Part shown: positions 12,347 through 62,613 of the stretch, piece by piece | Numbering within the stretch: position 1 is the first letter of the stretch | Layout of the letters: each line of letters begins with the position of its first letter | Virus record (IMG/VR): IMGVR_UViG_3300045996_002337 | Location: 186,001 to 250,000 of that record | DNA length: 64,000 nt | Direction: 5' to 3' (one strand) | Notes under the pieces: generated by a model | The model's database searches: none | Seen by the model: the letters and a program-made list of their open reading frames with translations, nothing else | Told to the model about the DNA's origin: nothing | Program-made: the position numbers and the translations under genes

Positions 12347-12366
12347 ACAGAAATTTATGTCTTAAG

Positions 12367-12448
12367 CTCCACGATCTGGGCTCGAACCAGACTTGATCTT
12401 TCGATCGCGGATTAACAGTCCGCTGCCACACCCGGCGGCTCTCGTGGA
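12367..12448 (-). tRNA. tRNA-Asn(GTT)-like with long variable arm, no encoded CCA, flanks extend the acceptor stem
   Basis: GCGGA-CTGTTAA-TCCGC; GATC-GAAA-GATC variable arm; CTTAAGCTCCACGA/TCGTGGAGCTTAAG 14-bp stem. Confidence 0.65.
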
Positions 12449-12476
12449 GCTTAAGACACTTACATAATGTTCTTTG

Positions 12477-12548
12477 CTCCAGAGGCAGGGATCGAACCTA
12501 CGACGGACGCATTAACAGTGCGCTGCTCTACCGCTGAGCTACACTGGA
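12477..12548 (-). tRNA. tRNA-Asn(GTT), no encoded CCA
   Basis: Canonical cloverleaf; leader TGTTCTTTGC pairs with trailer GCAAAGAACA. Confidence 0.85.
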
Positions 12549-12577
12549 GCAAAGAACACGTTTCAAAAATACTTAGG

Positions 12578-12651
12578 AGTGACCAGAGGGACTTGAACCC
12601 TCATTATCTGCATTCACAGTGCAGCGCGTCTACCAATTCCGCCATGGCCAC
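12578..12651 (-). tRNA. tRNA-His(GTG), no encoded CCA
   Basis: CT-GTG-AA; leader ACTTAGG pairs with trailer CCTAAGT; C at -1 and T73 are atypical. Confidence 0.75.
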
Positions 12652-12668
12652 GCCTAAGTATTCTTACT

Positions 12669-12744
12669 TGGTACGTCTGAGAGGATTCGAACCTCCAACC
12701 TGAGCCTTCGTAGGACCCTGCTCTTCCAGTTGAGCTACAGACGT
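12669..12744 (-). tRNA. tRNA-Arg(ACG)
   Basis: CT-ACG-AA, CCA. Confidence 0.9.
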
Positions 12745-12750
12745 ATTGTT

Positions 12751-12826
12751 TGGTAGGGGCACAGGGATTCGAACCCTGACTTGACGGATTAAAAGTCCGC
12801 TGTGATAACCATTTCACCATACCCCC
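12751..12826 (-). tRNA. tRNA-Lys(TTT)
   Basis: CT-TTT-AA, CCA. Confidence 0.85.
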
Positions 12827-12841
12827 GTTAGGAGGTACGTT

Positions 12842-12887
12842 TGGCAGACGCGCTAGGCGTCGAAGACATTTGTCGCATTGCGCGTCC
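12842..12887 (-). ncRNA. 46-nt mini-tRNA-like element
   Basis: GGACGCG...CGCGTCT-G-CCA acceptor stem enclosing a small GACA-AA-TGTC hairpin. Confidence 0.4.
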
Positions 12888-12900
12888 TTTCTTTGTTGAT

Positions 12901-12972
12901 TGGCATCCCGTCAGAGAGTCGAACTCTGTCCATGCGTTTTGGAGACGACAGGCCCTAGCCGTAGGCCGAGAT
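12901..12972 (-). tRNA. degenerate tRNA-Trp(CCA)
   Basis: CT-CCA-AA loop, intact T arm and CCA, irregular D arm and anticodon stem. Confidence 0.6.
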
Positions 12973-12984
12973 ATTAACTTGATT

Positions 12985-13078
12985 TGGCTCCCTCGGACGG
13001 ACTCGAACCGCCATATTACGCCTTACGGCCTTTACGTCTGATTAACAGTCAGGTCTCTTACCATTAGAGTACAAGGGA
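12985..13078 (-). tRNA. tRNA-Asn(GTT) with 24-nt variable region
   Basis: CT-GTT-AA; variable arm GCC-GTAA-GGC; G73; CCA. Confidence 0.8.
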
Positions 13079-13086
13079 ATAGAACT

Positions 13087-13161
13087 TGGTGCGCCTCCCC
13101 AGAATCGAACTGGGCTCTCTCCGGTTAAGAGCCGGGACTTCGCCAGCAAAGTTTGAGACGC
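13087..13161 (-). tRNA. tRNA-Lys(CTT)
   Basis: CT-CTT-AA, CCA. Confidence 0.8.
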
Positions 13162-13169
13162 GAAGAAAG

Positions 13170-13248
13170 TCTGAACAAAAGCCTTGCGGCGTGCGGTCTC
13201 AAGGAGGTTCAATAAAAGTGATAACCTTGAAGTTGCGAGCGGTTCAGA
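13170..13248 (-). ncRNA. Y-RNA-like small RNA (no tRNA module)
   Basis: TCTGAA-C-CG...GGTTATC-ACTTTTA...GCC-GCAA-GGC-TTTTG-TTCAGA; homolog of 10100..10181. Confidence 0.6.
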
Positions 13249-13253
13249 TTGTT

Positions 13254-13328
13254 TGGCGCTCCGTAGGGGTTACGATCCCCTCTAGCCAGGTTGAAAGCCT
13301 GGTGACCTCACCAGATGTCTAACGGAGC
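13254..13328 (-). tRNA. tRNA-Glu(TTC)
   Basis: CT-TTC-AA, CCA. Confidence 0.85.
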
Positions 13329-13334
13329 ATTGTT

Positions 13335-13410
13335 TGGTGGGCCCTCACGGAATCGAACCGTGTCCTTCGGAGCTTCAATCCGACGTACGCACCAGCTATA
13401 CCAAAGACCC
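13335..13410 (-). tRNA. tRNA-Phe(GAA)
   Basis: TT-GAA-GC, CCA. Confidence 0.85.
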
Positions 13411-13418
13411 ATAAATTT

Positions 13419-13494
13419 TGGCTGGCCACCGCGGTCTCGAACCGCGAACCCCTGGTTTTGGAGACCAGTGCTCTGCCAATTGAGCTAGTGACCA
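13419..13494 (-). tRNA. tRNA-Trp(CCA)
   Basis: CT-CCA-AA, G73, CCA. Confidence 0.9.
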
Positions 13495-13498
13495 ATAT

Positions 13499-60552: not shown

Positions 60553-60631
60553 AATGTTCTTGAACGACCTCAGACTTTTTATGTCGTTCGTTGCTGACAT
60601 TATCACCGCCACGTTCGCGGTAGTCAAATCT

Positions 60632-60749
60632 TGGTGGGGACTCGTGGGCTCGAACCACGGACCTACTAGATGTCTACTTTCTGCATGGACAATGGGCGCC
60701 GTTCCATGCAGTTTCGCTCTAATCGCTCTACCAACTGAGCTAAGTCCCC
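60632..60749 (-). ncRNA. tRNA-like RNA with a hairpin inserted in the anticodon loop
   Basis: Near-consensus acceptor, D and T arms plus CCA; loop holds a CTGCATGGA/TCCATGCAG hairpin; no clean 7-nt anticodon loop. Confidence 0.65.
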
Positions 60750-60842
60750 ATTTCACAGAACACACATCGAATCAACTTGTTCCCTTGGGCAGGAACACGC
60801 TGCAGGCGCTTGATTCTTTCCACTAATGTATGTGCTGTGAAA

Positions 60843-60919
60843 TGGAGCGGACAGTCGGATTCGAACCGACACTTCAAGTTTGGAAGACTCACGTGCTAAC
60901 CGTTGAACACTATGCCCGC
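60843..60919 (-). tRNA. tRNA-Gly(TCC)
   Basis: CT-TCC-AA, T73, CCA. Confidence 0.9.
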
Positions 60920-60954
60920 GCATAAACCAAGTGTTAAGGCACTTGGACACTATT

Positions 60955-61030
60955 TGGTGCCCCCACTACGATTCGAACGCAGGACCCCCGCATTACAAGT
61001 GCGGTGCTCTACCAACTGAGCTATAAGGGC
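60955..61030 (-). tRNA. tRNA-Thr(TGT)
   Basis: CT-TGT-AA, CCA. Confidence 0.92.
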
Positions 61031-61162
61031 AAAATTACAATGATTGAGTCCACCCTCAAACTCTCTTACTCTTGGATGGAAATGTCTTGTCTTCGCAAAG
61101 GCGACCCCGAAGAGTTATCCGAATCGCCACGGACTTCAGCCGCTAAGCCGCATCAATCAAAC

Positions 61163-61249
61163 TGGTGGGTACTGTAGGATTCGAACCTACTCACGCAATA
61201 GCGAACGGGGTTACAGCCCGCTTCAGCTCTCCAACTCTGACGAGTACCC
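61163..61249 (-). tRNA. tRNA-Tyr(GTA)
   Basis: CT-GTA-AC, variable arm, CCA. Confidence 0.88.
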
Positions 61250-61260
61250 ATAAAACTAAA

Positions 61261-61321
61261 GTCAACAAAAGATACGGCGAGGGGTTGCCTAATGAATGAT
61301 AACCCTCAACCTACGGTTGAC
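61261..61321 (-). ncRNA. minimal Y-RNA-like RNA (61 nt)
   Basis: GTCAA-C-CG...GAGGGTTATC...CCCCTC...TTTTG-TTGAC. Confidence 0.55.
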
Positions 61322-61326
61322 AAATT

Positions 61327-61401
61327 TGAGATTCGAAGAAGGAATCGAACCTTCGTTGCCCGACTTTAATGTGGGGTGCGTTACCACTACGCCATTCGAA
61401 T
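61327..61401 (-). pseudogene. pseudo-tRNA, anticodon unresolved (loop contains ATTAAA)
   Basis: Good acceptor, D and T arms; distorted anticodon arm; 3' end C-TCA. Confidence 0.5.
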
Positions 61402-61406
61402 GTTTG

Positions 61407-61479
61407 TGGAGGTAGGGAGGATCGAACTCCCGACATCTAGCTTGCAAAGCTAGCGCTCTCCCAGCTGAGCTATACCCCC
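61407..61479 (-). tRNA. tRNA-Ala(TGC), no encoded CCA
   Basis: G3.U70, TT-TGC-AA. Confidence 0.88.
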
Positions 61480-61613
61480 GAGATTTGGCGGGCAAGTAGC
61501 CTTCAATAGGGGCCCAATCCTATGAAGCGGTATCGGATCTACAAGACAGAAGACCTTCCATTCCGGTTTTTGATGTCTGACGCTTAGCGTAACCGGCGAA
61601 ACATTCAGCTGAT

Positions 61614-61688
61614 GTAAGACGGCAGGAGTCGAACCTGCAAAGTATCCCGTGGTCGGTGTGCCAATTCCCGTTTAACTACCACGTCTTA
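61614..61688 (-). ncRNA. tRNA-like RNA lacking an anticodon arm
   Basis: TAAGACG/CGTCTTA acceptor, GCAGG-TTCGACT-CCTGC T arm, GGAATTGGCA D-loop-like segment. Confidence 0.5.
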
Positions 61689-61694
61689 ACATTT

Positions 61695-61770
61695 TGGAGC
61701 GGGCAAAGGGGTTCGAACCCTCGACATCGACCTTGGCAAGGTCGTGCTCTACCAACTGAGCTATACCCGC
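61695..61770 (-). tRNA. tRNA-Gly(GCC)
   Basis: TT-GCC-AA, T73, CCA. Confidence 0.93.
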
Positions 61771-61999
61771 ATAAATTCTTGGGAAGCTGTTAACTTACGC
61801 TAGACCGCTCCCCACGTCGTCGCAGCCGAATCAAAGCTTCGGAAGGCTTTAGGACCGGCATAGTTTCCACAGCCGGGCTCCACCACTCGGTGTCTAATGT
61901 CACCGAGACCATAGGGCAATTATCGGCCAGGGCCCCTCAACAGTGTTCCGACACCGTAAGATGTGGTACCGTCCATCGCTTTCACGACGCTGTTGTTCT

Positions 62000-62076
62000 T
62001 GGTCGGAACAGTAGGATTCGAACCTACGACCCTCTGGTCCCAAACCAGATGCGCTACCAGACTGCGCTATGCTCCG
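62000..62076 (-). tRNA. tRNA-Pro(TGG)
   Basis: TT-TGG-GA, CCA. Confidence 0.92.
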
Positions 62077-62112
62077 AATGTTCTATTTAGCAATTATATT
62101 ACATGTGCTTTG

Positions 62113-62188
62113 TCTGGGCGACAGGATTCGAACCTGCGACCTCTCACTTCCAAGGCGAGCCGTCTGACCTGACTGACAATACGCCCAG
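62113..62188 (-). tRNA. tRNA-Pro(TGG), no encoded CCA
   Basis: CT-TGG-AA; leader TGTGTTTTGT pairs with trailer ACAAAGCACA. Confidence 0.8.
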
Positions 62189-62360
62189 ACAAAACACACA
62201 TAAACAAAAGATTGTTGAAGCTTCCTCTTGAGGCTCTGGGCCGGTTTTATCGGGATCCCAGCTGGGCCTTGTACCCAGTCAACAAAACTTTATTGAAATC
62301 GGCGGATCTAAACAGCCTCCTGGCGTCCTAAACCCCGGATAGGGGAACCGAAATATAACT

Positions 62361-62444
62361 TGGTGCGCTCGGGGAGACTCGAACTCCCACGCCTTTCGGC
62401 ATCAGTCCCTCAAACTGACGTGTCTACCGTTCCACCACGAGCGC
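62361..62444 (-). tRNA. tRNA-Leu(GAG)
   Basis: TT-GAG-GG, variable arm, CCA. Confidence 0.9.
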
Positions 62445-62520
62445 TTTTACCTCTGAATTTTCCTTTTGAGAAGGTGTGCGTTGACAGTTTGGACAGAGCA
62501 ACGCCCAGAAACACATGAGA

Positions 62521-62613
62521 TGTTGAACGACGGGATTCGAACCCGCACATTGCGCCGGTGATTAGCCGGTGCTAAGTATACCAATTCCTCACGTTATGCA
62601 AACACGTTCAACA
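62521..62613 (-). ncRNA. tRNA-like RNA, anticodon AAT, 9-bp acceptor, 12-nt insert before the D arm
   Basis: TGTTGAACG/CGTTCAACA; CT-AAT-CA loop; T arm intact; no CCA. Confidence 0.55.

Follow-up and report, generated by a model that had tools for sequence, protein, structure and literature searches.

The known arrangement that comes nearest to the one described here is the ribonuclease III (RNase III) stalk of ribosomal RNA (rRNA) precursors, in which a helix of some 20 bp or more, made by the flanks of 16S and 23S rRNA, surrounds the mature RNA, and from which the RNA is freed for final trimming by a staggered cut of the kind proposed below. Among transfer RNAs (tRNAs), maturation of the viral polycistronic tRNA transcript of phage T4 reportedly needs RNase III besides RNase P, the participating enzyme being that of E. 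coli, and RNase III has also been proposed to act on chlorovirus tRNA precursors (PMC4810235). Those bacterial and T4 tRNAs that lack an encoded CCA and are matured by RNase Z/BN require post-transcriptional nucleotidyl transfer. In T4 the RNase III site is in a hairpin of its own that precedes tRNA-Gln, rather than in a clamp made of leader and trailer, and bacterial tRNA 5' ends are held to be products of RNase P. Here we describe four CCA-less tRNA genes of a phage, lying in a 64-kb window (the whole stretch of DNA analysed, bases 186,001-250,000 of the viral contig of IMG/VR record IMGVR_UViG_3300045996_002337; window positions carry the prefix w), whose leaders and trailers pair with each other and lengthen the acceptor stem, an arrangement we refer to as a clamp. 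Unlike the rRNA stalks, a clamp encloses a single tRNA, is coaxial with its acceptor stem and measures only 11-15 bp, and the cut is predicted to fall at the mature ends themselves. The structure is well supported by sequence comparison, which also indicates that dozens of other tRNA arrays of phages and mobile elements contain the same clamp, and the clamps appear to be pointing to an undescribed way of cutting tRNAs from their precursor; full-text searches, limited to the library searched, gave no description of clamps on phage or array tRNAs.

The viral contig is 349,660 bp long with 51% G+C and a CheckV completeness of 97%. ARAGORN finds 51 tRNA genes and a permuted transfer-messenger RNA (tmRNA) in the whole genome, all on the minus strand, with 47 of the tRNAs inside the window; Rfam adds a few further tRNAs to this set. 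Positions 1 and 72 were taken from the ARAGORN bracket output, and pairing of the leader (-1, -2 and onward) with the trailer (73, 74 and onward) was measured in coaxial register with the acceptor stem. In the 45 CCA-encoding genes leader-trailer pairing never exceeds 2 bp, whereas four of the six CCA-less genes (His, two Asn and one Pro) have acceptor stems extended by 11-15 bp (4/6 versus 0/45, Fisher test p = 6e-5). Because plain shuffles retain self-pairs, non-self combinations of leader and trailer served as the within-genome control, and only 2 of 2,550 reach the threshold. The minimum-free-energy and centroid folds of all four precursors are a cloverleaf with an extended stem, at -40 to -55 kcal/mol and z-scores of -4.9 to -7.5; 200 shuffles yielded no fold as good. 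The components of the four clamped genes are as follows.

w12653-12666, minus strand: leader arm of the tRNA-His clamp (-2 to -15), pairing with w12577-12564; C-1 at w12652 is mismatched with U73.
w12578-12651, minus strand: tRNA-His(GUG), positions 1-73 (ARAGORN; Rfam 64.6 bits).
w12564-12577, minus strand: trailer arm of the tRNA-His clamp (74-87), with two G-U pairs at the distal end.
w12549-12559, minus strand: leader arm of the second tRNA-Asn clamp (-1 to -11).
w12477-12548, minus strand: second tRNA-Asn(GUU), canonical body, positions 1-73, then CAA (ARAGORN; Rfam 60.5 bits).
w12467-12476, minus strand: trailer arm of the second tRNA-Asn clamp (74-83); G73 (w12477) pairs with C-1, for an extension of 11 bp.
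w12449-12459, minus strand: leader arm of the first tRNA-Asn clamp (-1 to -11).
w12367-12448, minus strand: first tRNA-Asn(GUU), positions 1-73, then CUU (ARAGORN only; below the Rfam gathering score).
w12357-12366, minus strand: trailer arm of the first tRNA-Asn clamp (74-83), 11 bp formed by -1 to -11 with 73 to 83.
w62189-62203, minus strand: leader arm of the tRNA-Pro clamp (-1 to -15), 22 bp continuous with the acceptor stem.
w62113-62188, minus strand: second tRNA-Pro(UGG), irregular D arm, positions 1-73, then CAA (ARAGORN; Rfam 39.5 bits).
w62099-62112, minus strand: trailer arm of the tRNA-Pro clamp (74-87), with three G-U pairs; extension 15 bp.

The tRNA-His has no encoded G-1, has U73 instead of C73 followed by CCU rather than CCA, and its clamp consists of the C-1*U73 mismatch and then 14 bp (-2 to -15 with 74 to 87). 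The His, second Asn and Pro genes score above the 29-bit gathering threshold of the Rfam tRNA family (RF00005), and the ARAGORN-only call of the first Asn is explained by its long variable arm, a GAUC-GAAA-GAUC hairpin. Such class II-like tRNA-Asn(GUU) genes, with the variable arm closed by a small hairpin loop (a GNRA loop in both window copies), are seen in three phages, at w12367-12448 and w12985-13078 (both on the minus strand), L214 p1 15853 and L216 p1 17535.

Two CCA-less genes, both scored by Rfam and by the pairing measure, are unclamped:

w61407-61479, minus strand: tRNA-Ala(UGC), CCA-less (A-CAA), unclamped.
w61330-61401, minus strand: tRNA-Leu(UAA), CCA-less (C-UCA), unclamped.

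The CAAACA of the tRNA-Ala, set against the usual CCAAACA, looks like the loss of one base. An earlier note on this DNA, made from the letters alone, had already listed the Ala gene as lacking both CCA and pairing, and the Leu gene is a second such exception that it did not mention. Its further statements, that the flanks of the two Asn, the His and the Pro genes pair and that those of CCA-encoding neighbours do not, both hold, with helices longer than it gave (11, 11, 14 and 15 bp, respectively). It had also counted two tRNA-like sequences in the group, and these we remove: near w61614 a bulge precedes 4 bp of pairing and the fold z-score is +0.18, and at w62522-62611 (noted at 62521) irregular pairing comes after 2 bp and the z-score is -1.07, with an Rfam tRNA score of 22 bits for the latter and none for the former. 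Two other RNAs with terminal stems of 17 bp and 20 bp, at w57476-57624 and at window-equivalent 64168-64294 (both on the minus strand), each lie directly after a CCA-ending tRNA and contain T-arm-like hairpins. These could be degenerate clamped genes or structured RNAs of another kind. The clamps were also considered as Rho-independent terminators, an assignment we reject.

Typically, a CCA-ending gene of the dense arrays is separated from the gene after it by a spacer of 6-7 nucleotides (nt; AACAAT or AGTT...). Upstream of the first array there is a sigma-70-like promoter (w14102-14075); none that is convincing was found adjoining the clamped genes, which therefore lie inside a polycistronic unit. 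The phage collection holds no close relative of this genome at the DNA level; its helicase is at most 43% identical to those of Brevundimonas, Bradyrhizobium and cyanobacteria phages, so that it has no near relative among cultured phages, and homologues of a neighbouring 291-aa open reading frame (ORF) are at most 46% identical and give no evident conserved neighbourhood. A strain variant about 98% identical is present in freshwater and wastewater metagenome contigs with the clamps intact, and differs by a change from A-U to G-U at one His leader position and from A-U to G-C at acceptor pair 4:69 of the Asn gene at w12477-12548. Three relatives by UvrD helicase (G001, G003 and G004, 60-71% amino-acid identity) encode CCA in nearly all of their tRNAs, and none of their genes passed our first clamp criterion.

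A wider comparison shows that clamping is a discrete state. Among 1,213 distinct tRNAs from unrelated loci and the three relatives, extensions are bimodal, either no longer than 2 bp or at least 12 bp, and all of the long ones belong to CCA-less genes; when this genome and the other sets are taken together the two classes are at most 2 bp and at least 11 bp. Among 1,916 distinct tRNAs of phages and mobile elements, pooled from sets that include loci fetched by the clamp pattern, a mismatch-tolerant criterion identifies 54 clamps, on 52 of 222 CCA-less genes and on 2 of 1,694 CCA-encoding ones, against a chance expectation of about 4e-4 per tRNA. In the sets sampled without the clamp pattern the corresponding figures are 13 of 153 and 0 of 1,146. 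Some CCA-less tRNA-His calls suffer from ARAGORN register errors, with G-1 counted as position 1, and the unclamped CCA-less count is therefore an overestimate. Within the whole tRNA regions of four clamp phages, 3/4, 3/4, 2/5 and 1/2 of the CCA-less genes are clamped and none of the CCA-encoding genes. We also note that in two unrelated huge phages of 373-434 kb (L018 and L023) nearly every tRNA ends in N73-C-(A/U)-A, with C74 and A76 kept and position 75 changed, which is a distinct departure from CCA that extends over the whole array.

Many of these clamps are on tRNA-His genes, which were ascertained with a flank pattern (CTTAGG-N-GTGG ... TCAC-N-CCTAAG) derived from the His flank of this phage and one homologue; the 19 non-His clamps were not ascertained in this way. 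The pattern matches 35 contigs from viruses and 8 from bacterial assemblies, the latter including the isolates Achromobacter anxifer LMG 26857 (L262) and Exilibacterium tricleocarpae R142 (L263), both with the clamped His gene inside an array of 24-32 tRNA genes, presumably on a mobile element. The only other CCA-less genes of the Achromobacter array, Asn and Trp, are also clamped. Asn accounts for 7 of the 19 non-His clamps, compared with a background of 6.5% (p = 1e-4).

Several observations indicate that the clamp helix is kept by selection in RNA. When 32 distinct tRNA-His precursors are aligned, the six inner pairs carry no information, since the search pattern dictates them; at each of the six outer positions (-8 to -13 with 80 to 85), 29-31 of the sequences form a pair, and 4-6 pair types occur. 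Overall, 93.6% of the alignment cells are paired, compared with 80.1% in shuffles (none of 500 reaches the observed value) and at most 54.5% when the partner is slid, and pairing decays beyond -13. Compensatory double changes separate this phage from others, two in the Asn flank relative to G007 (-6:78 from C:G to U:A, and -7:79 from U:A to G:C) and one in the His flank relative to G008. The non-His helices contain 22 G-U pairs and only 2 A-C mismatches (p = 4e-5), a strand asymmetry showing that it is the tRNA-sense RNA that forms the helix and not a DNA palindrome. The acceptor stems of the clamped genes covary as those of working tRNAs do.

These data bear directly on an explanation without any RNA function, in which the inverted repeats are relics, at the DNA level, of a mobile cassette or recombination site. 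The flanks of different tRNAs are indeed alike (those of the Pro and Asn genes of this phage resemble the Asn flank of G007), and the arrays occur in mobile elements and contain HNH genes. A DNA relic would nonetheless not be expected to carry the strand-specific 22:2 excess of G-U over A-C, which is an RNA signature, to preserve its pairing by compensatory changes, or to keep helix and acceptor stem in exact coaxial register without exception, and we regard this explanation as extremely improbable.

The anatomy of the class suggests how the tRNAs may be released. Across the class the helix is 11-18 bp long, with a minimum of 11 bp, and starts at -1:73, or in most His genes at -2:74, where U-1 stands opposite C73. 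The pair G-2:C74 is nearly constant, the proximal consensus is ...UUGC in the leader and GCAA... in the trailer, and a semi-conserved A-G, facing U-U, marks the distal end. In the non-His clamps this motif is A-12/G-11 in 12 of 19 (background 4.7%) and never falls at -13/-12, whereas in the His clamps it is A-13/G-12 in 19 of 32, as well as in both of the His genes outside the search pattern, and never falls at -12/-11. At the other side of the helix, the His clamps retain C74-C75, with U, C or A at position 76, and the non-His clamps keep C74 only; C75 is present in 3 of 3 His and 0 of 10 non-His tabulated clamps, and by inspection in no CCA-less non-His clamp of the larger list. Thus both the motif and the 3' C remnant shift by one nucleotide, matching the extra 5' nucleotide of mature tRNA-His, the one tRNA whose mature form bears one.

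A maturation scheme consistent with this register shift can be proposed. In the array transcript, the 11-15 nt leading into the tRNA form pairs with the 11-15 nt that follow position 72/73, and the acceptor stem continues as a helix of 18-22 bp (23-27 bp stacked on the T stem); the RNase P and RNase Z sites are buried in this extended helix, which includes the -1:73 pair. A double-strand-specific endonuclease, most probably host RNase III, would cut at the junction of acceptor and extension with a 2-nt 3' stagger, giving a tRNA with a 5'-phosphate that ends in N73-C74 or, in the case of tRNA-His, which would keep -1, in C73-C74-C75, and the 3' end would be completed by a phage or host CCA-adding enzyme. 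Nucleotides 75-76 would be discarded and so be free to drift while complementary to the leader, which would account for the clamped genes being CCA-less.

The dimensions of the clamps agree with what is known of the enzyme. RNase III cuts across the minor groove to leave 2-nt 3' overhangs with 5'-phosphate and 3'-hydroxyl ends, its ideal substrate is 22 bp with a distal box about 11 bp from the cut, and processing stalks offer it about two helical turns, with at least about 11 bp on each side of the cut (PMC3867540). With a cut at the acceptor end, the clamps present at least 11 bp of extension on one side (11-15 bp in this phage) and the 12 bp of acceptor plus T stem on the other, the A-G/U-U motif lies at base pairs 11-12 from the proposed cut, and the helix is conserved by compensatory change, as expected of a processing stalk. 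A 2-nt stagger at this point would leave N73-C74, or C73-C74-C75 in His, which are the nucleotides these genes retain. The usual enzymes would have difficulty with such a precursor: an acceptor stem lengthened by 4 bp is enough to impair a protein-only RNase P strongly, and the bacterial enzyme depends on contacts with a free leader and with the 3' DCCA (PMC4797305), while RNase Z substrates have a single-stranded trailer after the discriminator, whereas in the clamped genes the 73/74 bond lies inside a long duplex and the sequence from there onward is paired to the leader. Since the duplex hides both sites, something must cut or unwind the helix.

In our view the best explanation of these features is a staggered double-strand cut, most likely by host RNase III, followed by CCA addition, to which we would give a chance slightly short of even; here we infer the enzyme, the cut positions and the use of the products in translation. 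The earlier note had suggested a distinct route of this kind, and it remains the best fit to the sequence evidence, namely an RNA-level helix, a length of at least 11 bp and the distal motif, with the cleavage itself inferred. A stronger version, in which a single RNase III cut about 11 bp from the A-G/U-U motif makes both ends independently of RNase P, leaving only CCA addition, and does so widely in the phage and mobile arrays of Proteobacteria, we consider doubtful.

One alternative is that the clamp serves folding or insulation, holding together the ends of a weak or unusual tRNA in the crowded array or protecting a CCA-less 3' end against exonucleases, and later opens or is unwound, after which maturation is left to RNase P, RNase Z or exonucleases, and the CCA enzyme. 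Some of the bodies are odd, as with the long variable arm of the Asn and the irregular D arm of the Pro (39.5 bits), leader-trailer helices also aid rRNA folding (PMC10250234), and the conserved U-1*C73 mismatch of the His family could be a breathing point. Canonical tRNAs are clamped too, such as His (64.6 bits) and Asn (60.5 bits), and an unbroken helix of 11-15 bp that includes -1:73 is very stable (precursor folds of -40 to -55 kcal/mol), and 4 bp already impairs RNase P-type cleavage; such a clamp also leaves the fixed-distance A-G motif and the one-nucleotide shift in His unexplained. We therefore think it unlikely.

The motif might instead be read, together with the helix, by some other endonuclease of the host or the phage, with RNase III not involved. 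Its semi-conservation, along with the proximal consensus, suggests reading of sequence, and the distal boxes of RNase III are not conserved in sequence (PMC3867540); set against this are the 11-bp ruler and the inferred 2-nt stagger, both hallmarks of RNase III, and the lack of a candidate gene that co-occurs with clamps among the families tested, and we judge it quite unlikely. The phage itself has no match to PF00636 or PF14622, PF00636 was not found in five other records, four of them with clamps, and among the families tested no phage protein co-occurs with clamps across all of the phages. With neither a phage RNase III nor a tested protein tracking the clamps, a host enzyme is the economical candidate.

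A number of points weigh against cleavage by RNase III as proposed. The host RNase III is assumed as the cutter; RNase III sites are not normally so precise, and the use of the acceptor/T stack as one half of the substrate is putative. No RNA runs holding the phage sequence were found, the matches being only to freshwater and wastewater metagenome DNA contigs. C74 says little by itself and is not a clamp-specific marker, as it is also present in 116 of 140 unclamped CCA-less phage tRNAs and in the two huge phages noted above, and the C75 contrast depends on about two independent lineages of His genes. In most clamped His genes C73 faces U-1, and in this phage U73 faces C-1, so that the His products would lack the canonical G-1:C73 identity pair and efficient histidylation is doubtful. 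Finally, two clamps keep CCA, with mismatches at C74/C75; for example, the tRNA-His of G001, the closest relative (L081 p1 13063), has a full CCA and yet is clamped, with mismatches U-1*C73 and A-3*C75 and with U:A as the -4:76 pair where the CCU genes have A:U. Loss of CCA thus seems to follow from clamping and not to be required for it.

Four enzymes encoded by the phage may bear on the tRNA ends:

w33618-34727, minus strand: nucleotidyltransferase of the CCA-adding enzyme/poly(A) polymerase family (PF01743, 73.5 bits; PF12627, 23.6 bits).
C1:178344-178742, minus strand, outside the window (locus L219): Thg1-like 3'-5' nucleotidyltransferase (PF04446, 115.8 bits, in a 269-aa ORF).
w17947-19014, minus strand: RNA ligase (PF09414).
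w37906-38841, minus strand: calcineurin-like phosphoesterase.

The CCA enzyme, which the earlier note had correctly reported, could complete the 3' ends of the clamped tRNAs, and the Thg1-like protein may add N-1 to a tRNA-His without an encoded G-1. Neither is tied to clamps as a rule: the complete phage G005 has three clamps and no PF01743 gene, and a Thg1-like gene is present in G000, G001, G007 and G010 but is missing from G005 and G006 and from 25 His-clamp contigs, of which five are complete. The ligase and the phosphoesterase are possible tRNA repair enzymes.

This end-repair kit (RNA ligase, Thg1-like protein and CCA enzyme) is one of the features that would suit deliberately unprocessed tRNAs, acting as decoys or sponges for, say, anticodon nucleases or modification enzymes directed at tRNAs with GUN anticodons, an idea also raised in the earlier note. 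GUN anticodons are over-represented among the clamps, through the excess of Asn noted above and the His family, and G-1 is missing from most clamped His genes. On the other side, the clamped His gene is the only tRNA-His of an otherwise full genome set, and in the tRNA regions obtained for G005 and for the fragment of G008 the sole tRNA-His is likewise a clamped one; neither the C left at the 3' end (CC in His) nor the register shift would make sense unless mature ends were produced, and acceptor stems that covary like those of working tRNAs point the same way. With the sole tRNA-His clamped and C74 (C74-C75 in His) kept, decoys become less likely, and we consider them distinctly improbable.

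Three further known systems show partial similarity to the clamps. Archaeal bulge-helix-bulge helices, the substrates of the tRNA splicing endonuclease, also use flank pairing to excise stable RNAs; their 3-4-3 motif (two 3-nt bulges around a 4-bp helix) is absent from the clamps, the helices of which are perfect or have a single 1x1 mismatch. In the mature form of the 8/4 and 9/3 tRNAs (PMC5389517) the acceptor stem is longer and the T stem shorter, within an acceptor/T branch of 12 bp, and the clamped genes do not correspond to these either, having T stems of 5 bp and their extra pairs beyond position 73. YrlA and related bacterial Y RNAs, which are bound by Rsr, have a tRNA-like fold closed by a terminal 5'/3' stem; unlike the clamped genes, which are ordinary cloverleaves with anticodons, they are permuted, with the stem at the anticodon position and the acceptor-like arm closed by a loop. 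The clamped genes have the normal tRNA order and score 19-22 bits with the YrlA model (RF02553, at least 69 bits needed), and we reject this assignment. A separate YrlA-like RNA with the full permuted tRNA-like layout is found at w59447-59563 (minus strand; 39 bits, gathering score 69), and a TROVE (Rsr/Ro60) domain is encoded in a 571-aa ORF at C1:181883-182761 (minus strand), about 3-4 kb before the window; judging by sequence, the phage seems to have a Ro-Y RNA pair of its own.

Other features of the arrays deserve mention. A 137-aa ORF between array tRNA genes (w11599-12012, minus strand) has no Pfam match and, on reading its sequence, looks like an HNH-type homing endonuclease. Two CCA-encoding tRNAs (w56228-56332 and w60635-60749, both minus strand) have a hairpin insert in the anticodon loop, one of them Asn-like with 32 nt between U33 and G34 and the other with about 47 nt, both too short for group I introns. 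Outside the window (C1:258611-258769 and 259276-259675, minus strand) are two tRNAs with CUA anticodons, which are amber suppressors, and the permuted tmRNA, with the tag ANEANYRMAA.

The burial of the RNase P and RNase Z sites in these precursors implies either an alternative route of excision or a regulated, conditional release, especially of tRNA-His and tRNA-Asn, during infection. The class yields a testable model of an RNase III substrate, and the presence of clamped arrays in cultured bacteria offers an experimental system that does not depend on the uncultured phage. For annotation, a CCA-less gene in an otherwise CCA-encoding array is likely to be clamped, and the clamps may explain why jumbo phages encode their own CCA-adding enzymes.

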